Shown here one piece after another: positions 1-13,158 of a stretch of DNA of 64,000 nt. Each line of letters begins with the position of its first letter. Positions within the stretch are counted from its first letter, which is position 1. The DNA comes from Trichoplax adhaerens (lineage: Eukaryota > Animalia > Placozoa): the NCBI RefSeq assembly GCF_000150275.1, contig NW_002060943.1, positions 6,378,299-6,442,298 on the forward strand, in the 5' to 3' direction. Made by a program: the position numbers and the translations under genes. The notes under the pieces are model-generated. The model worked only from the letters and a program-made list of their open reading frames with translations. It did not search any database and had not been told where the DNA came from.

Positions 1-1362
1 TCGCATGTTACACATATTAAGTCGCTTAAATCCAATTACTTTTTGACCATGTATCGCTCTCAATTTTATGATGAAAGTGGTGATACTAAAGTTATTAAAG
101 CCTGGAATTTTGATAAAAATGGTCAGACAATTAAATTATCAGGCCATGCTGGTCGTATCCAGTGCTTTACATTAACCGATGATGAACGCTATTTACTGAC
201 TGGCGCAAATGACAACAGCGTCATCATTTGGGATTTATCCAATTTAACCATCTATGGCAAGCTATTAGGACATACTGAATCTGTTCAGTCCGTTGTAGTA
301 ACATCGAAAGCACGCCTTGCTGCGAGTGGATCAAAGGATGCTACAGTTCGATTATGGGATTTCAGCTCAAATATATGCCGCTTAATACATACTTATCAGG
401 GACATCAACATGTCGTTGATCATGTTTCATTTTCACCTAATAATACGTATATCATCTCCTTTTCATCAGAGGAGACTGTAGTAAAAGTGTGGAGTGTTGC
501 AACAGAAAATTTAATTGGCGATTTCCACATGCATGCTAAAATGCATACTTATGACATTAATGATATGAATCGTAAATTGATAATTGGAACTAATGATGGC
601 AGAGTAATCTTACTAAATATCTACGATTTATTTCGTAAGCGAGCTGGAACTAAGGTAGTAGGATGGAAAGATTTAAAGGTAAGAATAGGGAATGTAGAGC
701 GAAAATATATCGTACTTTACAAGCAAAATACGTATTGGATTACATGTTTAATAACGAGACCTGGCAAAATAATCTTCTGTACATAAACTAATATCATTAT
801 AGATCGTAAACAATTTTATTTTAAAGGTAGTCATGCTTGATGTTCCAATAATATCATTTATCAGATTACTAAATTTATCACAAACTTCTAAAATATGTCA
901 TCATCTAAGTTTTGCTATTGGAAGTAATTGATGAGAATGCAATTTTTGTTTAAAGCGTAAGCGTTAACTAATTAAATAATTAAAAAAATTCATCATTACT
1001 CGTTATAAGTCAGTAAATTATCGGCATTACTAGCTTTTATTCAAATAATGCAATTACAGGTGAATATGATGTGATTAATGATTTAAATTTTGTACTCTCA
1101 ATAGGCTAAATCTAGACCTAAATTCAAATTGAGTAATCCTGAGAAGGAAAATGGAAATATTAAAGACTCAAATCACATTAATAATAATTTGGAAAATTCT
1201 AATGAAAACCTAGAAACTTCTGAAAGGCCTAGACTTGACTCTAAGTCTTCAACGAATAGTAGTAAAGGTATTTTACGCAACTCTATTACGACTCCACCGC
1301 CTGAAATTTTGCAGTACAATCCTCCAGAAGTTCGCGCATCTGCTTGCTGTGTAATTTCTTAA
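1..1362 (+). CDS. 3' end of NACHT/WD40 (NWD1/2-like) paralog A; partial, WD40 repeats plus C-terminal CaaX exon
   Basis: Exons <1..678 (donor AAG|gtaaga) and 1105..1362 (acceptor tag|GCT), phase 0. The frame is open from base 1. WD40 repeats are present (GH...IWD, GH...LWD). It aligns by eye with the downstream paralog (LKSNYFLTMYRSQFYDESG..KAWN vs LKSNYFLTIFRTQMYDRSG..KVWN) and ends ...ASACCVIS*. Confidence 0.88.
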
Positions 1363-2751
1363 TTTAAATTCTACGTCGGCTTCATTGTCACAAAAATAAT
1401 AGACTTCAGTTTATTATTTAAATCTCATAACTTTCATAATGTAGATAATTCCATTTCATTGTAAATAATTTTCAACCATAGTTAATCCGATAGGAAAAAT
1501 GGTTTTAGATACTAATTTGTAAGGAAAATTAAGCTAACAATGTAGATATGATTTAACTTATTCGGTGATCAATTTTACATTTTCGAAATTGCAATTTTAT
1601 TCCATTGTAATGCGACAGATTTTAATAATTTGTACCATTGATCTTGTTTATCTGCTTAGTAATTGAGACTAATTTAGACTCAGGACATTACTTTTATGCA
1701 GTATGGCATTGTGCATTTTTCTTTCCAATTTTATAAATTATAGTGAAATAGCATCTAAATTTTCAAAGATAAACAATGCGGCACTACATCTTTATGAAAT
1801 GAAATTTAAAAATACACACCTACTTCACGTCACCAGCAAATACTTTGAATGCAGTTTTTATTATACTTTACAATCGTAATCATCAATCGAAATTATTTTA
1901 AGTAAATTTGAATAGTATGGTATTAGTTGAATGTTTTTCTATGCTCATTGAAGAAATAGTAAGTATTATTTTAATGAACTAATAGGAAAGATATTGAGGT
2001 AGTTATATCCTTAACATTAAACAAGAAATCGAGTAATTTGTAATTATGGTATCTTAATTATTTTATATAAAGTTAAACAATATCTCGCTATTCTATAATT
2101 TTAGATTGAATTAGCTTAAAAAGCTTTAAAATCGTATTCTACAATTTTAAAATATATGAGACTTTGGTTGATTAATCAATCACAAACGATCGTTACTAAA
2201 ATAAAAGAATCGCAGAATTAAATACAATAAATTACGAAAGTTAAAGAATAATAGATAGATAAAACAAATAACAAATTAAATGCATTAATAACTGGCTATT
2301 AACATACTGTTTTATAATGTACATGTTAACGTTTTATAAATAAAATTGATATGTAATCTTAAATAAATCATATTAGATATTACTGATTTACGTACATTAC
2401 ACTTTTAGGTTAAAGTTTAACAGATATTGTTAAAAGTTGTACTTTAGTATGCAATTTAATAGCAATATTTTGCTGCACAATTGTGCTCCTATACTGAAAC
2501 GACCCTCAGGATATATATACCCATACAACAGAATGGACAGCCTTAATTTACTTTAATAAAGAAGAGTATAGAATACTTTACAAAGCGAGAAGTGTGACTT
2601 ACTTTAATGGAAGTACGAAGAAATATCTGAATAGATAAGTAATCCGTATAAATAATAAAAAATCACAGAAAAAAATTATAATTTTTAATTGACCAGTAAA
2701 TAAAAACGTAATACTCACGAAATAATGATAATTCATTATGACTTATACAGT

Positions 2752-3075
2752 CCTAACTCTATCTCTAATCCTAGCTCTAGCTCTAACCCTAGCTCTAACC
2801 CTCGCTCTAACCCTCGCTCTAACCCTAGCTCTAACCCCTAGCTCTAACCCTAGCTCTAACCCTAGCTCTAACCCCTAGTTCTAACCCTAGCTCTAACCCT
2901 AGCTCTAACCCTAGCTCTAGCCCTAGCTCTAACCCTAGCTCTAACCCTAGCTCTAACCCTACCTTTCTAATCCTAGCTCTAGCTCTGACCCTAGCTCTAA
3001 CCCTAGCTCTAACTCTAACCCTGACCCTAGCTCTAACCATAGCCCTATAGAGGTCAACTTTAGCGCTAACTCTAT
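2752..3075. repeat. Telomere-like 12-bp minisatellite (CTAACCCTAGCT)n; minus strand (TTAGAG CTAGGG)n
   Basis: Directly visible tandem array with degenerate edges. Each half-unit is one mismatch from TTAGGG. Confidence 0.92.
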
Positions 3076-4669
3076 TGCTAGACCTCAAACTCTAAGGAAA
3101 TTCGATTTTAACATTGCAACTAAAGTATCTTTATCTTTGAATCCTAGCTTAAAATAGTTCATGCTTACAGACACTCTTCGATTGAAGCAATTTACTATTT
3201 CTCATACAGCTTATACTGTATGTTGATATCATTCGGCTGTTATAGAGAAGGCATAATTTTGACGATACTATAAAACATTCAAGTGTGAATCGGTTAGGAT
3301 CATTTTTATAGTAATTTCGATTGTTTTGTAAGATTAGATTCTCAGTTAATTGGTTTCTCTTGGGATGGTAGGCTACATTCGCGTTAAAAAGTATTTAATT
3401 AAGATGATGTATTTCAGAGCGATCTTGCTATGACATTCAGTATTTGCTAATTGCACAAGGGGTGTAGTTTTAGCTTCGACCAGTTTATATATGTAGATTT
3501 TCTCTGTCAACATCTCTACGTTTCAATATTGTAATTATGCAGCATTAATTATATTATTATAATTATCAGTATTTACCGTATACGTACTCATGTACTCGTG
3601 ACAATATTTCTATAGTACTTTACCGGTTGTTAACGTATCATGTTGCTACGTTCCTAATATCGCTAGAACAAATGTTCACAAGTAACTTAGTTATTACTAG
3701 CAAAGTTTAGATCACTCTGATGACGCCTTTCATAATGCTCATACATTATATATAATATAGTTATTAATTATATGCGATTGCTAGTAAGAACAACAAAGAT
3801 TTAAAATTATCATCCTTCAATCATGCAGCACAGTAGTATACTGTAAGATAGTGTTTTTCCGCTGAAAAGCACTAATCCGTGGGCCTACGCCACCAATCAT
3901 AATGATTATAATTATTAGAGCCTCTTATGCACTATCACATGAATAGGAATGTAAATTCCTGACTTTAAATATTAGCAAATTTTAATTTTTTCTGAGCTGA
4001 AGCAATAGACGACTTTATAAGTGCTAGCATTTCATTATCTTAGAAAGGATAAGTTAGAGTTTCGATAAGGTATTTGATGAGCCGCTACAATGTCATATTA
4101 AAATTACTATAAGGACATTATTCCTTGCACTGAACATATGTTGCATGTACTATGATATTAAAGACATTTTCTGCAGCAATATGCAGAAAATTATTCGAAT
4201 TCTTGGACTGGTAATTAATCTTATTGAACTGACTAGCCGAATTCGCACTCATTGATCAATACAAGTCCTAATCGAGCTGCAATAGGCATTCGATGGTTAT
4301 AACATGATTGCACTGATTTCCAAATGGCAAAAAAACATTTTTTCTATGGATTGAGCGGTTACTGTCATGATAACATGTGAAATTCTTCTGCGTTAATTGA
4401 CTCATGATAATGATGGAAAGTTGATTGCCAACACATCTACCTCACAACAGAGCTAAATAATAGTTAAAATTATTGAAAAACAAGTATTTGCCTAGGTAAC
4501 TATACCCCTATCGGACAGCTTTATAAAAATATTAGCTTTAAATTCATTCTAATTCCATAGCTATAAGCCTATAACAATGCTTCTCCATACTTAATATGCA
4601 TACTTTTTTATGACGTCAAGGACAAGAGATATTCATAATGATCAACAAATAAGGATAGATGGTCTTATT

Positions 4670-4683
4670 GTTGCTATAGTAAC
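4670..4683. promoter_or_regulatory. Candidate RFX X-box GTTGCT-AT-AGTAAC upstream of NWD paralog B
   Basis: Near-perfect palindromic match to the X-box consensus (GTTRYY-NN-RGYAAC), about 335 bp upstream of the ATG at 5017. A second one-mismatch site, TTTGCCTAGGTAAC, lies at 4487..4500. Confidence 0.5.
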
Positions 4684-5016
4684 ATTGGAGATTTAAGTTG
4701 AAACTTTATGATGGGATGTCATATAGGGAGTTTTGTTACGAATTTCGCATCTAGGCATCTCCGATGAATATGACATTTTGACCATTTTTATCCATATGCC
4801 AGTTTGGAAATATTCAAGATTGTCATTACAGGATAATATATATAAAATTGAGGTGAGGATAATTGTTGATTATTAAATGTAACCCGCTGAGTAATAATTA
4901 TCGATTTTATGCCAAATGGAAATGATAAATTGTACATGTTTGAACTATTTTCAATCAAAGTAAATGGTTTCTTTGATACAATAGATTGTTAGCTGGAAAT
5001 CTATCGACCTCCAGTG

Positions 5017-8000
5017 ATGGCAGTTGATGAAGTATTAGAAAAGGTTTTAGCTGGGAAGACAGAAAACCTACCACCTCAAAGATCGCAGATTGTTCGAATA
5101 TTTACTAGTTCTACCTTTACAGGTAGGTAATTTTCACGTATGGCTTGTTGCCATATTGAAAAGAACTTGCAATTTCTGAAGAAACAAATGTGTCAAAATG
5201 GCTCTTTTTAACCTCATCTGGCACGCTTAATTACTTGGAAGACTAATTTATAGTTCGTTTATTGTAGATACTGCAAATGAAAGAAACACCCTTATGAGAG
5301 ATGTCTATCCGAAACTCAAAAATTATTGTCGTAGTCGTTATGGATTAGAATTTCAAGTTGTTGATATGCGATGGGGTGTTCGAGATGAAGCAACGGATGA
5401 TCATATGACAAGTGCCTTGTGTATGGCAGAAATTAAAGCGTGTCAGCGGCTATCAATTGGGCCTAATTTTGTGGTAAGTAATCGTTTAGATACAAGAAAA
5501 TAGTAATATTTAGATAATATCTTTTTTATTTCGATCTAAAGACTTTGATGCATAAGATTTTGTGTTATTGCTATTACCAACTAGTCAAATTGATGAAGCT
5601 AACTACTTGAAGTAATGGATTAGGCATGATATGGATTTCAATATATTTAAAATCGAACTACAAATTACCATACGCTTCCCAATAATATTTAGCTTCAATA
5701 CAATTTTAATTCCTGTAATCTTTCTTTGCATTTCATATAATATTCTTACATGAAACATTTCTTTATCTCACCTAATTTTAAGCATTAATTGTGATGGAGG
5801 GTTCGATATCTCAGAGGATTGAGATTTAGTCGCCATTTACAATTATTACAACAAAGGGGTTATAAAAGTTATGCTTTATTGTAGGTTAGTAATGTGAAGT
5901 ACAGTGAGGTAGTTACGGTAGACCAACGTGCAAGCTGTCGTGAGTAACGAGTAGAAGTATTAGACTGTGAGAGACTAACTAGAAGACTAACTGAGAGGCT
6001 AATGAACTCTGAGGTAGAAATCGCCGGTATTTATAGTTTTAAAGATAGAGCACATGCAGAGAATAGGATTGTGGAATTAGATACAACATATACCATAACA
6101 GATTACAAAATAGCAGATGATTGTAGAAAACAGCGAGTACCGTAATAACTAAATACAGTAGTCTATATATGAATGTAGAGTAAGCGGACTGTAGATCTGT
6201 CTAAATATAAGAGCAATACAACATGTCTATATTTAAGAGTAGAATATAGTTACAGTATATTCTAAATACACTACATTAATCAATCAAACAGCAATAGTAA
6301 ATTAACGAGTAAAGTTTTGTACGGTGTATCTTAATACTGAGCTGAGAGCTCATGTTTAAGAATTAGAGCGTATAAAAATCCCTAATAATTTTAATATTAG
6401 GCTCTCAAAGTTGTTTTTATCGCACGGTAGCCAATTGAATCATAAGATCAAAAAATGAATTTTACCACGAGGATATTGTAAATATATTTAATATCCAAGA
6501 TTAATCATACGTGATAAACAGTATAAGCTACTTATTGTGGTTGAGCGAGTTATTTTAAAATATAGCACATATCCTTAATTCTATATTAATTGTTCGTCCT
6601 TGAATGATCATTAAATTTATAATCTTTCCGGCAGTAATGAATATCTTTGAGTATAGATTTTTACATTCTATAGTCTACAATTGTGTTGCTGTAGTAATCA
6701 ACCTCTATCGGTTCGAAATATTTGTAACACATCCGACCAAATCTATATGCCATAGTCAGATTGAAACTGCTTTGTAGTATTAAGTATCAGTATCATTAAA
6801 TTTGCTATTGGAACTATGCCATTATTGCTATTTATAAGTTAGAAATACGGTAGAATGTACACGGTATAATTTAATTCAAAGTTTTCATCTTCAGTAGCAA
6901 AGCCAATCTAAATTATCATGAATTCTATAATTCATTTAACAAATACTCGTGCTATATTCTGGACAATTAGTTCTAATGAAATTGTTGTTATACTTTGAGA
7001 TCGATTCCTACGGTAATGATTTTTAATTTCAATAAGCCAACAGCAACTGAATCACTTCTAAAATGATTATCAATTTTTACAATAGCACTTTTACATTTCT
7101 ACCATCGGTTGAATGTTCTTTTACCATAATTACACTTTTCGATATTCAATTTCGTCAATTTAGTTAGTAAAATTACTGTTATCTTAATAATAGGAGAAAA
7201 AATAGTTTAATAACGTAATCATGGGTTAAATTTTAAAAGAAAAAACCCATCTACAATTCTTTTAGCGAAGAAAGCAACGTTCTTCTGCTAGATTGATTAG
7301 GATGAAGAAATTGTTGATTTTTCGAGCAGTCACATTTCTGAATATGCAAAAAATTGTACGTCATTAAGTAGCTATATGCTCTTACTTGATTATTAATAAT
7401 TTTACAGACATTCTTGGGCCAGAAATATGGCTATCGTCCTTTTCCTCCTAAAATCCTTGCTACTGTCTATGATAAAATAATTCAATTGCTGACAGACCAC
7501 GGAAAGTCAACTGAGACATTTAAGACATGGTTTAAATTAGATGAAAATGCCAGTCCAGCCCTGTATAATTTACAGCCTATATCTTCAATCTTGAAGTATT
7601 ATATCGATCCTTCAGAGCCGGAATTGCATAAGGAAGATAAAGCGAAATGGTGGGATGCTTTTAATGAAATGCAACAATCATTTCGCTATGCTGCTAAAAG
7701 GCTATTGGAGAAGCAAGGGCTAGAGCGCGAAGAAGCAATGAGATTTTTAATTTCAGGTAGCATGCATATTGCTATCAAAGATCAATCTATTTGAAACTAT
7801 GCCATTAATTAAATGTAGATGATACTAACTTTACGGTCAATGAAAGATATTTTTTAGCTTTAACAGTTAAGCTGCGCGTTAATAAAAGATGTTACTTAGC
7901 TATAACAGTTTAGCTGTATATTGGCAAAATGCTCATCATTGCCCATCTTCTTTTCTTGATCTAGTAACCCACGAGGAAGTTATTAATGGTATTCTTAACA

Positions 8001-11000
8001 CAAATAAAGATATTGAGCCGCACTGTATTGGATTTGTTCGAAAAATTTCCAATCTTCAATCTGATCTATCTAACAAAAATGCTCCATCTTTTATTGATGT
8101 TGAATGGGGAAAATCAGAAGTTGATAGCGAAGCTCAGGATTTACTAGCTGATTTGCGAGATATTAAGCTACACGAAAAATTGCCCGCATCACGCTTATTT
8201 GAATCCACAATCGATTGGACAGATAATGGTATCGATCCTGAAAACGTTAAAGCTCATAGTCGCTATATTGAAGAATTTTGTGGCAAATTTTATAACACCA
8301 TGGTATCCATGATTGATGATGGGGTAGCAAAATCAAATCAGTTAACTTCCACCGATGATCTTTATCAAGAAGTTTTAAGTCATTTACATTTTTGTGTAAA
8401 GCAGTGCAAATCATTTCATGGACGCCGAAACATTCTCCAGCCTATTGAAGATTATATACAGCATAGCTGCCAAAACTCTAATGATATTCAAGAGCAACTT
8501 CCTCTCATCATCCACGGAGTATCAGGTAGTGGCAAAACATCAGTGATGGCTAAATGTACTCAGTGGACAGGCCAATCATATCCCCATTGTAAAATCATTG
8601 CTCGCTTTCTTGGTACTACGCCTAATAGTTCATCTATTTCCAAAACTATCTTCTCCGTTTGCCAACAAATATGTCGAATATATGATAAAGATGAAACACA
8701 AATTCCCGATGGATACTCTCAATTAGTTGCTTATTTCGCCATGCAGATACAGAATATCCCAGCTAACAAACCACTCGTAATCATATTGGATTCTTTGGAT
8801 CAATTATTGCCTGTTGATGGAGCTCATCGTATGCAATGGATACCGAATCGATTACCATCTCATGTTGCTATGGTATTATCGACTTTACCTTATGAATACG
8901 ATTGCTTGGCTGCATTAAAACAGGTATTACCTGAAGCAAGTTATATTGAAGTTAATCCTCTCCCGGTGGATGTGGGAATGCAAATTATTGATGACTGGTT
9001 ATCATCTGCATCACGTACAGTTAGTCAACAACAGCGAGAAATTATGACTGTCGCAGCTAAACAATGTAGTTTACCGTTATACCTCAAACTAGTATTTGAT
9101 CAAGCTCGGCGTTGGTATTCCTATCACACTATAACATCAGCAGATCTACCTGTTACTATACCAACAGTTATATCGCTATTATTTGATAAGTTAGAAAGAC
9201 AGCATGGTAAAATGTTAGTTTCGCGTGCACTATCTTATATTACTGCATCGCCATCAGGTGTAGCTGAATCAGAGTTGGAAGATTTACTGTCATGCGATGA
9301 TGTTGTCCTCCAAGACGTTTATCAATACTGGCTACCACCTGTTCGTCGTATACCTCCATTACTTTGGACAAGGATTCGAAGTGAAATTGATGAATATCTT
9401 GTTGAACGTGAAACTGATAATAATCGCGTTATATACTGGTATCATCGGCAGTTTATTGAAGTTGCTCGTGCACGTTACCTCCATAATGAAGGTGTGGTGC
9501 GAGAAATTCATAGCTTATGTGCTGATTACTATCTTGGAACATGGGCTAATCAAGAGAAACCTTTTAAATATACTGATAAACAAGTTAAAATGTTTAAATT
9601 AGATAGTGAAAATGGAAAAGCAGACAGGAAGGTACCTAGTCAACCGTTGATATTTGAATTGGATGGAGATATGGCCGGCCAAGGTGGCCGAGTTAGGTAT
9701 AATTTGCGAAAAATGAATGAACTTCCGTATCATTTAATTAAAGCTGGGCGATTGGAAGAAAGTAAAGAATTTGTTTATTGTTCATTTAACTGGTTACTAA
9801 CGAAATTAAATGCAACATCAATTCAAGAATTGTTAAATGATTTTACTATGGCACTGGATGCATTACCTGAAGAAGATAAAGAAATCAAATTAGTTTACCA
9901 AGCTATTCGTTTGTCAGCTTCAACTGTGATCACGGATCCACGCACCTTAGCCGCTGAATTAGTAGGCCAACTATCCGATCGAAGCTCGGGGGATGATTGC
10001 CAATACCTTGCTAAACTTGTTCAACAAGCAGCAGAATATGGCCAATATAATTACCCTCTCATGCCAATTCGATCATGTTTAAATATTTCGGGAGAGATTT
10101 TACAAGCTACCCTTGAAGGCCATACCGAAAAAGTCTGCTCCCTTGCTATTTCGCATAACGGATTATTTCTGGCGTCGGGCTCTGAAGATAATACAGTTAA
10201 AGTATGGAATATTGCATCTGGGAATCTAATGCATACTTTAACCGGTCATCATGAATATGTGTATGGATTAGCTATTACTGCAGACAATCGTATGATTGTT
10301 TCCTATACATATATTTGGGAATATGGAAAGAAAAGTCCTATTATCGTTTGGAGTTTAGAGTCTGGTGATCGACTAATGACTCTACGAGGGCATACCAAAG
10401 GTAAATGTCGGCTAGTGTTGACCAACAATTGCAAGTATGCTGTATCAGGTTGCAGAATCATGGGCAGATTACGAAAAGTTTTACCTCCTCGAAAGAAAGT
10501 AAAGTCCGATAGCGAAGAAGAAGATGAAGATGAAGATGATGAGATGATGATGATGATGATGATACCGAAGGAAACAAGAAAAGTAAAAACAATAAAGATG
10601 AAGACAGACCTACTCATGACTATGTTATACAAGACATAGATGACGGTGACGATTCTGCTGATGATGGAGAAGAAGTCGATAGCGATGACGAAGATGAAAA
10701 TAGTAATTGGTATGCAGTACTTGTATGGAGCTTAGAAAGTGGAAAATTAATTAGATATATGGATGGCCATACCAAAGAAATCACTGCAGTAGCTGTGGAT
10801 TCTTCTAGTACATTTGCTATATCAAGTTCCAGAGATAAAACAGCTCGTATTTGGGATTTAAATCATTACTATTGTCTGCGTGTATTAAAAGAAACTAATG
10901 GAGGCTGTCCTTTAGCTGAACTAGCTATATCTCCTGATAACTCCTTAGTTTTCATAGAAGGATTATGGCTTGGTCTCTACGATATCGCATCAGGGAAACA

Positions 11001-13158
11001 TTTGCATAAAATGGAGGACCCAGAGTATTCCTCTTCAGTTTATATGGCTGAAATTAGTCCTGATGGCAAGTTAGTTGGGACTGCAACTTCTGGCAATGAT
11101 GTTAAGTTCTTCAATGTGGCTAGTGGCGAATTCGTTTTCCGAATCAACGGCGATGATCGACAATATCGTCAAGGAATGGCATATTTTACAGCAGACAGCC
11201 AATACGTTATAGCCTCACTTGGCAATGATAAATTATCAGTTATTGATATTGCAAAAAGAGAAGTTCTTGCTGAATTTAAAGGGCATACTCGAGAAATTAA
11301 CGATTTAAAAATTTTCCGCGGTCGCGGGCAGCCATTTGCTGTCACTGCTTCAACTGATGAAACGATAAAAGTTTGGAATTTATCCGACCTGAGTTCTCTC
11401 TCTAATAAAAGCAGCGGAGATGCTGAACAAGTTGAGTACCATACTGATTATATTACATCAGTCCAAGTTACGCATGATAATCGCTATTACATTACAAGTA
11501 GCAAGGATAATACTACTAAGAAGTGGGATATGGAAACTGGAAAATTAGTTAAATCACTATCGGTAAAGCATGGACCACTAGGCTATATTCATGAGACAAA
11601 GGCTAGCCAATATAGGCAAGGAATTGCATTTCCATCTCGGAAAACATTGCGTTATACCGTTGATATTGAAAAACTTGAGGTAATTGATGAAACTAGGATG
11701 CCATTTCGAGCGGTGGATTGTGCTGCTATATCGGATGATGGCCAATATATCATTACATTATTAAGTGACAGGACTTTAATAATTTACACATCTGATTTCA
11801 GTACAATTGCTCAACATAAGCATTGTTATGCTACTGATATTATCCTTTTAAAATCGAACTACTTCCTAACTATATTTCGAACCCAAATGTACGATCGATC
11901 CGGTTCTAATAAAGAAATTAAGGTGTGGAATGCTTGTAATGGTCAATGTATAGCAAAATTAAGTGGCCATGAACGTAATATTTGGTGTCTAGCAGTAACT
12001 GAGGATGAGAAATATGCTGTTTCTGGTGCTTGGGATAAAACTTTAATTGTGTGGGAATTAGCGACTTTCGAGATCTATGGTAAAATGGTTGGGCATACTG
12101 ACATCGTAAAATCGCTACAGTTGTCGAAGAATAAATATTTGGCTGCTAGCGGCGCTAGTGATAATACTGTTCGATTATGGGATTTTTCTACACCACAATG
12201 TCAACTGATTTATACTTTGGAAGGCCATACAGCAACCATTGATCGCCTAGCCTTTCTGATGGAAGATCACTATTTGATGTCAATATCATCGGAAGAAAAT
12301 CTTGTTAAAATTTGGAATCCTAAGCAAGGCCAACTTGTCGCCAATTTTTATTCACATGCCAAGATTGTTAATTTTGCTATAGCAGAAAAGAAAAATATGC
12401 TTATTGCAGCTACAGCAGATGGAAGAGTTATGCCATTGAAGATTAATAAGCTACTGCAACCCCAGTCTACTGAGAGTGTTACTCCACAAACACAAAATGT
12501 AAGCAAGAGAAAAAATTTCTTATAGTGTCCTTATTGTCGGTTTATTACGCTTTTTCTTAATTAGTAATTAATACAGAAAAAGTGTTTAGCATCTAAAAGT
12601 TATGTTATTTATTCCGAAATACGATGAATTGAGAGCTTTCGATCATCCGTTACCAATATAAAGTAGCTTACGATAAAGTACTAATTCCCCGATGTAACTT
12701 TAATAAATCCTTTGATAACATTATTATAACTCTGTTCAATTCAGTCCTTATTGAACATCAGAAAAAAGTCTAAGTTGAAAAGCATTTCTATCTGAGCAAA
12801 TACTTCTGAAAAGGATTATTTGGTAGACTTTGTAACTATTATAAATATTTATCTGCAATTAATAGAGTAGTCTTTTGCCGTAAAATGCGCATAAAATTGA
12901 AATACGGATTTACTCGCTTCTTCGAGTAAAATCCACTATATAAATTATTAGCGATTACAGCTAACCAACTTATTGCTGTCATTAAAATTTCAGATCAAAG
13001 AGGAAAATTCTCCGCAGTATGAGCAACAAGCTGTGAATCAAAGTCAGCAAGAATCGCCTCAGCAGTCATATGAGCAAAATCCTCAGCAATATTCGAGTGT
13101 CGCAAGATTTGAAGGACGAAATGTTAATGCTGGTTCCACATGCTGCGTAGTAATGTAA
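5017..13158 (+). CDS. DUF4062-NACHT-WD40 protein (NWD1/NWD2-like) paralog B, about 1786 aa if one frameshift at ~10542 is repaired
   Basis: Exons 5017..5122, 5268..5473, 7408..7756, 7965..12498 (frameshift near 10542) and 12994..13158, all GT-AG with consistent phases. The N-terminus VRIFTSSTFTD..ERNTLM..VYPKL..VDMRWGV..FLGQKYGYRP is DUF4062-type. Walker A GVSGSGKT (8516..8539), Walker B IILDSLDQL, many WD40 repeats. Ends ...GSTCCVVM*. Confidence 0.88.
5790..6275 (-). mobile_element. Solo LTR, family A, in intron 2 of NWD paralog B
   Basis: 486 bp with TG...CA ends and a 5-bp target-site duplication TTAAT (5785..5789 and 6276..6280). On the minus strand TATAAATA (~6030) precedes AATAAA (~5878). 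Near-identical copy at 36606..37091. Confidence 0.9.

Follow-up and report, generated by a model that had tools for sequence, protein, structure and literature searches.

Does a large animal sensor of the NWD1/NWD2 type, built from a NACHT ATPase and WD40 propellers, carry at its C-terminus the kind of lipid anchor that is typical of Ras? The question is raised by two adjacent genes at the start of a 64,000-nucleotide stretch of the Trichoplax adhaerens genome (NCBI RefSeq assembly GCF_000150275.1, contig NW_002060943.1, positions 6,378,299 to 6,442,298 of the forward strand), hereafter the window. This stretch is AT-rich eukaryotic DNA of about 31% GC. On its plus strand, the 3' end of an NWD-type gene (gene A) is followed in tandem by a second, complete gene of this type (gene B). 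Judged from their sequences, it is highly probable that these NWD sensors end in a lipid-anchor tail of the form S-x-x-C-a-a-X (a, aliphatic; positions are counted back from X at -1, so that the CaaX Cys is at -4 and the Ser at -7), and that this tail is encoded by a spliced terminal exon. The sequence features themselves, their statistical non-randomness, their conservation throughout the family and the presence of the modifying enzymes in the genome are established, and are presented below.

Predicted terminal exons of three tandem paralogs

The 3' ends of genes A and B are organized as follows, a slash marking the splice junction.

1..678, plus strand: last part of the gene A WD40 exon, with Pfam matches to WD40 and to the NWD2 C-terminal propeller; the remainder lies upstream of the window (locus L011)
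679..1104, plus strand: last intron of gene A, 426 nt, phase 0; donor AAG/GTAAGA at 679, acceptor TTTTGTACTCTCAATAG/ ending at 1104
1105..1362, plus strand: terminal exon of gene A, 85 codons and TAA; low-complexity linker, then R-A-S-A-C-C-V-I-S
12499..12993, plus strand: last intron of gene B, 495 nt, phase 0; donor AAT/GTAAGC at 12499, acceptor AAAATTTCAG/ (TTTCAG) ending at 12993
12994..13158, plus strand: terminal exon of gene B, 54 codons and TAA; Q-rich linker, then SVARFEGRNVNAGSTCCVVM (...AGSTCCVVM)

An earlier reading of this DNA, made from the letters only (the sequence-only reading), had proposed that both genes splice in phase 0 from the last WD40 blade to a short exon, and had named the stops that would be met on read-through. 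The two GT..AG introns and the endings SACCVIS-stop and STCCVVM-stop are indeed found where that reading had placed them, and so are both stops, the gene A frame ending at 786 and the gene B frame at 12525 if the respective intron is retained. The long frame of gene A runs uninterrupted for 1,552 codons (from L011:6022 to window position 678), and its tail frame starts exactly at 1105, because the acceptor AG is part of an in-frame TAG. The motif is S-A-C-C-V-I-S in gene A (1339-1359, with C-V-I-S as the CaaX box) and S-T-C-C-V-V-M in gene B (13135-13155, with C-V-V-M as the CaaX box). The two proteins are 62% identical in the NACHT region, and the tails, which the same reading had considered unalignable except for their ends, are aligned by BLASTP over the last 7 residues only.

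A third tandem paralog, gene C, is located about 22 kb upstream, beyond gene A, and is 42% identical in the NACHT region. Its long frame ends at a strong donor (ACG/GTATGT), with an acceptor (TTTATTTTGCAG/) about 2.3 kb downstream, followed by the exon listed here.

L013:622-708: terminal exon of gene C, phase 0, 28 codons, SVSETAKPNSSARDNHLRAPTSSCCIIF-TAA, ending TSSCCIIF-stop

As gene C repeats both the phase-0 intron and the CCaaX exon, the diverged paralogs A, B and C appear to have one common design. S-x-x-C-a-a-X fits all three tails exactly, a further Cys at -5 adjoins the CaaX Cys in 3/3, and the tails (28-85 residues) are of low complexity and without a Pfam domain, their linkers being unalignable between paralogs. 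If the last intron of gene C is retained, the frame reads VCTCL-stop (L012:8349-8365), which is also CaaX-like; this ending was judged to be probably a coincidence, because it is generated by the GTATGT donor itself. About six NWD-like loci are present in the Trichoplax genome, and the placozoan tails compared here are those of the Trichoplax paralogs. One of the remaining loci, gene D (contig C1384, 38% identity), has a candidate 10-codon terminal exon, RPKHECCLSL-stop, about 550 bp past the long frame (L014:9449-10014), with a unit of about 90 bp repeated twice in between; it has no Ser at -7 and its splice sites are weak, and it was not counted. The tail of gene E is acidic and has no CaaX, and stop codons are present in gene F.

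How often such an ending arises by chance can be judged from the DNA itself. In the six frames of the window there are 9,707 stops, of which 12 are preceded by Cys-Cys at -5/-4, and only three of these have the full Cys-Cys-aliphatic-aliphatic-X-stop ending, two being the tails of genes A and B. Other loci, 87 kb in all, contain the same ending twice, one case being the tail of gene C, thus totaling five cases in about 150 kb, three of them paralog tails, with a chance rate of about one case per 150 kb of single-strand sequence. The joint probability that each of three paralogs has one such ending within 0.7-2.4 kb downstream is below 1e-6, a rough estimate from these counts that takes no account of the in-phase acceptor or of the Ser at -7.

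Conservation and origin of the tail in the NWD family

The best relatives of the Trichoplax proteins carry the annotation NWD1-like or NWD2-like and come from hemichordates, echinoderms, molluscs and cnidarians, with 42-45% identity over about 740 residues and E of about 1e-200. The sequence-only reading had suggested a survey of NWD C-termini, and one was made on NWD1/NWD2-like homologs collected by protein word searches, with tails deduplicated to 95 and vertebrate NWD2 outside the sample. A Cys at -4 in a CaaX ending is found in 114 of 217 NWD homologs (108 of the 164 that are at least 1,450 aa long), versus 5 of 120 unrelated generic WD40 proteins. Ser is present at -7 in 87 of the 95 distinct tails and I, V or L at -2 (a2) in 88, while -3 (a1) is variable; the residue at -1 (X) is L in 36, V in 23, S in 15, M in 6 and I in 5, with a few others, and the commonest residues at -8 and -9 are K/R. 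The CaaX prenyltransferases leave a1 free, require an aliphatic a2, and read X either by farnesyltransferase (FTase; S, M, A, Q) or by geranylgeranyltransferase I (GGTase-I; L, F, I). With Cys at -4, a1 free, a2 being I/V/L and X restricted, the pattern of a prenylation substrate is recognizable in the NWD tails. One or both of the two classical second signals are present in 40 of the 95, polybasic only in 31 (at least 4 K/R among the 12 residues preceding the CaaX Cys), an extra Cys only in 3, and both in 6.

S-x-x-C-a-a-X is common to NWD1- and NWD2-like proteins of cnidarians, lophotrochozoans, echinoderms, hemichordates, amphioxus, tunicates, lampreys, sharks, birds and mammals, as the following endings illustrate.

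Lophotrochozoan NWD2-like: ...QVARFVAKARGAQKSRACVIS
Starfish: ...KSKTCQVL
Amphioxus NWD1: ...KKSHFCHIL
Lamprey: ...SSRTCALL
Shark: ...SRACSLL
Bird: ...SQICSVV
Mammal: ...NKRSQVCLLV, with variants ending CLIV and CLIL

The rodent NWD1 proteins in the survey end in CLIL or CLIV, the mouse sequence itself not being among those seen. The gene B tail also contains VARF, matching the lophotrochozoan NWD2 tails (QVARFVAKARGAQKSRACVIS). The selection for a CaaX anchor, which the sequence-only reading had proposed from two genes, thus gains support from the third paralog and from the family-wide motif.

The distribution of the motif was mapped on a quick IQ-TREE tree of the NACHT/winged-helix region (about 500 residues, 77 proteins), with the tail excluded from the alignment. 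The Trichoplax genes A, B and C form one clade (SH-aLRT 98) within an NWD2-like clade (SH-aLRT 95). CaaX endings are found in 27/32 proteins of the NWD2-like clade, in 22/26 of the NWD1 clade, and in 1/18 of a third clade, and the CaaX label changes 7 times on the tree versus 22.5 times when labels are shuffled. Losses are apparent in rotifer and insect NWD2-like proteins. The third clade of metazoan NWD proteins, with members from cnidarians ('qui-1-like'), hemichordates, amphioxus and molluscs, is characterized by tails that are mostly acidic and D/E-rich. As one archaeal row is the only outgroup and the tree is otherwise unrooted, gain and loss of CaaX are not strictly separable; the simplest reading, given the shared Ser at -7, is a single old origin of the tail, before the placozoan-bilaterian split. 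The putative anchor is probably an ancestral and widely kept feature of the animal NWD1 and NWD2-like clades, mammalian NWD1 included, and not a placozoan novelty.

The exon that carries the tail has a different history. A dedicated last exon, as claimed by the sequence-only reading, is predicted for genes A and B, and for gene C as well; it does not hold as a family trait, since in the Lingula NWD2-like protein the last 330 residues, CaaX included, are encoded in one exon with the last blades, which rules out such an exon as an ancestral feature of the family. The placement of the tail on an exon of its own appears therefore to be specific to the placozoan genes, and the motif to be ancient. 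The Trichoplax genes share with the NWD1/NWD2-type STAND ATPases both the order of the domains recognized by Pfam (NACHT, HTH_NWD1, NWD2 C-terminal propeller) and the C-terminal S-x-x-C-a-a-X, and they differ from them in encoding the tail on its own exon and with a double Cys (CC-a-a-X).

Gene B and the competing explanations

Some of the evidence weighs against a lipid anchor in these proteins. The junctions 678/1105 and 12498/12994 are deduced from the genomic sequence. The X = V of the mammalian tails is less typical of prenyltransferase substrates. About one third of the full-length homologs have no CaaX, including the third clade with its acidic tails, the rotifers and the insects, so that the anchor would be dispensable in some lineages. 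Finally, an acidic loop of gene B that is encoded by (GAA/GAT)n contains a break in the reading frame (at about 10543-10636), which the sequence-only reading does not mention, and this gene may be a recent pseudogene. The model of gene B upstream of its last intron is given here.

5017..5122, plus strand: exon 1, with the ATG and the onset of the DUF4062/TeTIR-like region (...VRIFTSSTFT); donor CAG/GTAGGT, phase 1
5268..5473, plus strand: exon 2, DUF4062-like core; 71% identity to Lingula NWD2-like residues 66-144, E = 2.6e-32
7408..7756, plus strand: exon 3, remainder of the N-terminal domain, by alignment to Lingula NWD2-like
7965..10542, plus strand: exon 4, NACHT (Walker A GVSGSGKT), NWD1-type winged helix, APAF1-like helical domain and first WD40 blades; enters the acidic loop
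10543..10636, plus strand: two-frame stretch, about 94 nt open in both frames, (GAA/GAT)n acidic loop of a WD40 blade
10637..12498, plus strand: WD40 propellers in the second frame, by Pfam; ends ...DGRVMPLKINKLLQPQSTESVTPQTQN

The domains were searched for exon by exon, and the sequence-only description of the proteins as DUF4062-NACHT-WD40 is upheld for its second and third parts by scores above the Pfam cut-offs. NACHT is recognized in gene B by PF05729 (39.7 bits versus a cut-off of 26.7), with the Walker A sequence LPLIIHGVSGSGKTSV in exon 4; the winged helix following it by PF25469, HTH_NWD1 (54.5 bits versus 27); WD40 repeats by PF00400 (169.7 bits in 10637..12498 and 63.8 bits in exon 4); and the NWD2 C-terminal propeller by PF23586 (70.8 bits versus 33). 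The DUF4062 part found no Pfam match when the N-terminal exons of gene B were searched singly, and the label is given because exons 1-3 align to residues 43-259, the N-terminus, of the Lingula NWD2-like protein, for which PF13271 is recorded in a precomputed list. The 580-aa WD40 exon used as a query returned generic WD40 proteins only and was uninformative. From the N-terminus on, the proteins of both genes A and B are predicted to consist of a DUF4062/TIR-like domain, a NACHT ATPase, a winged helix of the NWD1 type and WD40 propellers.

As to the break in the frame of gene B, no convincing GT..AG pair was found around 10543-10636 that would account for it by an intron. All pairs of the right length class are devoid of a pyrimidine tract and embedded in sequence that is rich in purines and resembles coding DNA, and for this reason a canonical intron was rejected as unlikely. 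The shift is likely a one-base indel, resulting from an assembly or sequencing error or from polymorphism, or else a very recent frameshift. The alternative, that gene B is a decaying pseudogene whose CaaX exon is a relic, would leave genes A and C unaffected. While the missing intron speaks for such decay, the frame is still open over about 2.6 kb before the break and 1.9 kb after it, in DNA of 31-38% GC, the splice sites and the tail motif of gene B are intact, and the break falls in a (GAT)n run, in which a single base may plausibly have been misassembled or be polymorphic. Decay of gene B is thus unlikely, even though it is the best surviving of the alternatives.

A different possibility is that S-x-x-C-hydrophobic-hydrophobic-X is functional without being a prenylation signal, serving instead for docking of a partner, as a degron, or as a source of a redox-active or metal-binding Cys. 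Such a role would agree with the facts that the X = V of the mammalian C-L-L-V and C-L-I-V is atypical, and that the invariant Ser at -7 lies outside the CaaX rule. It explains poorly why the Cys is fixed exactly at -4, why a2 is I/V/L in 88 of 95 tails with a1 left free, why X is confined to residues read by FTase or GGTase-I, and why 40 of the 95 tails carry a polybasic or extra-Cys second signal; a PDZ-type ligand, for one, needs no Cys at -4 and would not accept S, M, L, V and F alike at X. We regard a non-prenyl function as improbable, and somewhat more so than the decay of gene B. Least credible, to the point of being nearly negligible, is the notion that the tail exons are chance open frames and the proteins stop, free of any lipid anchor, at the read-through stops after the last WD40 blade, as, even with junctions deduced from the genome and with low-complexity linkers that differ between paralogs, it would demand that three paralogs each acquired by accident a good donor, a pyrimidine-rich phase-0 acceptor and a CCaaX-stop ending seen only twice elsewhere in about 150 kb in six frames, along with the family-wide Ser at -7 in all three tails and, in gene B, the VARF of lophotrochozoan NWD2 proteins.

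The proposed anchor and its significance

From the tails described above, we infer in vivo splicing, lipid modification and membrane attachment of the NWD sensors. In this proposal, the short final exon, joined after the phase-0 intron that follows the last propeller blade, would encode a disordered linker ending in S-x-x-C-a-a-X. The Cys at -4 would be prenylated, by farnesyltransferase where X is S or M and by geranylgeranyltransferase I where X is F, as in gene C; the last three residues would then be cleaved off and the new C-terminus methylated by ICMT at the endoplasmic reticulum (ER); and palmitate could be added to the Cys at -5, as it is in Ras2 and H-Ras. The large sensor would thereby be held by its C-terminus against the cytoplasmic side of a membrane. 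The box of gene A, with X = S, predicts farnesyl, and so does that of gene B, with X = M, while C-I-I-F of gene C predicts geranylgeranyl and not farnesyl; the farnesyl anchor of the sequence-only reading therefore stands, as a prediction, for genes A and B and gives way to a predicted geranylgeranyl for gene C and for the many relatives with X = L. The Cys of gene A at 1345-1347, immediately upstream of the CaaX Cys, is a candidate palmitoylation site. The Trichoplax genome encodes the respective machinery: two PPTA alpha loci, three prenyltransferase beta loci and ICMT, at least 12 loci for DHHC acyltransferases scoring over the cut-off, and two GMP_PDE_delta loci.

The closest parallels are the tails of Ras and Rho GTPases, such as yeast Ras2 (...CCIIS), H-Ras, Cdc42 (...KKSRRCVLL) and RhoA (...KKKSGCLVL), which likewise consist of a disordered linker, a CaaX box and a second signal (an adjacent Cys or a polybasic stretch), often with a Ser a few residues ahead of the Cys near basic residues. 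The cargo is what differs, in NWD proteins being a STAND ATPase of about 1,700-1,900 residues and not a small GTPase. Phosphorylation of a Ser in the tails of Cdc42 and RhoA releases them from membranes, and by analogy the Ser at -7, usually preceded by K/R, is a possible phospho-switch for membrane release in NWD proteins, for which we know of no GDI-type partner. Another parallel is nephrocystin-3 (NPHP3), which is N-myristoylated and delivered to cilia by UNC119. It shares with the NWD proteins the DUF4062 N-terminal domain and the NACHT module, and differs in the N-terminal position of its lipid and in having TPR repeats instead of WD40; no CaaX is known to us in NPHP3. A third parallel is provided by lipidated NLRs, the plant RPS5-type NLRs being acylated at the N-terminus and NLRP3 palmitoylated internally. 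These are also STAND immune-type sensors held at membranes by lipid, their acyl groups being N-terminal or internal versus the C-terminal CaaX prenyl proposed for NWD.

Possible regulatory sites are found upstream of both gene A and gene B.

4670..4683, no strand assigned: X-box-like palindrome GTTGCTATAGTAAC, perfect consensus, located 347 bp ahead of the ATG of gene B; candidate RFX site
L013:7784-7797: X-box-like GTTACTATAGTAAC, near-identical to the gene B site, about 1.5 kb ahead of the first exon of gene A

The pattern GTHNYYATRRNAAC matches at two loci in the 64 kb, giving 3 matches, as the palindrome is scored on both strands, versus 0.69 expected; with the stricter GTTRCCATGGYAAC, allowing up to 2 mismatches, the gene B site at 4670-4683 is the only match. 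Between two promoters that cannot otherwise be aligned, the gene A and gene B sites stand out as an island of 13/14 identity, at different distances from the ATG. The spacer between the two genes contains a 12-bp tandem repeat, CTAGCTCTAACC, in 22.8 copies with 85% matches (window 2777-3047). In Caenorhabditis elegans, qui-1 acts in ciliated neurons. In Drosophila, CG10185, listed as the ortholog of Nwd2/Nwd1, is highly expressed in Johnston's organ (PMC7198581), which is composed of ciliated mechanosensory neurons. Judging by the two sites, RFX may control genes A and B, as it does ciliary genes. A role at the ciliary membrane is weakly suggested by the X-box islands, by the expression of the Drosophila ortholog in Johnston's organ, and by the ciliary, lipidated relative NPHP3. 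It is conceivable, if doubtful, that the NWD proteins are ancient prenyl-anchored STAND sensors of ciliated cells, controlled by RFX and carried by a chaperone of the PDE6-delta type, to which the two GMP_PDE_delta loci would be a lead. They would place a TIR-like NADase/NACHT oligomerization module at the ciliary or periciliary membrane, with the Ser at -7 as a phospho-switch.

The sequence-only reading had suspected, without being able to verify it, that such an anchor was new, and the literature that could be searched agrees. No paper in this searchable literature links NWD1, NWD2 or KIAA1239 with CaaX, prenyl or farnesyl, and no C-terminal CaaX prenyl anchor on a NACHT protein turned up there. 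The sole paper in which the terms co-occur is a gene table, and the CAAX matches displayed belong to the gene names Rit1/Rit2, 'Ras-like without CAAX'. In two 2026 preprints, which leave a lipid anchor unmentioned, the DUF4062 of TEP1, NWD1, NWD2 and NPHP3 is defined as a TIR-like domain with NADase function; the activity is shown for TEP1 and not for purified NWD1 or NWD2 (2026). NWD1 and NWD2 are little-understood relatives of the NLRs, and NWD1 has been linked in published work to neural development, seizures, liver ER stress and androgen signaling. A C-terminal fragment of mouse Nwd1, made in the same 3xFlag vector as full-length Flag-Nwd1, localizes to the ER, and Nwd1 was placed on the cytoplasmic face of the ER, a localization that the authors credit to the WD40 repeats (PMC11897295, 2025). 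By our own reading, on a point that the paper does not state, the 3xFlag tag of the fragment is N-terminal, thus leaving the C-terminus free, and a CaaX box processed at the ER would be an alternative explanation for this localization, one that the authors do not consider (PMC11897295).

In conclusion, neither the protein family nor the lipid signal is new; their combination is apparently undescribed, and has been kept from placozoans to mammals. For genome annotation, the consequence is that gene models that are truncated or limited to open reading frames drop a last exon that would be functionally decisive. If the proposed anchor is true, a conserved prenylation signal would place the NWD1/NWD2 sensors on the cytoplasmic faces of membranes, providing a simple explanation for the presence of the mouse Nwd1 C-terminal fragment at the ER, and the lipid-anchored STAND/NLR proteins would gain a class that is prenylated at the C-terminus.

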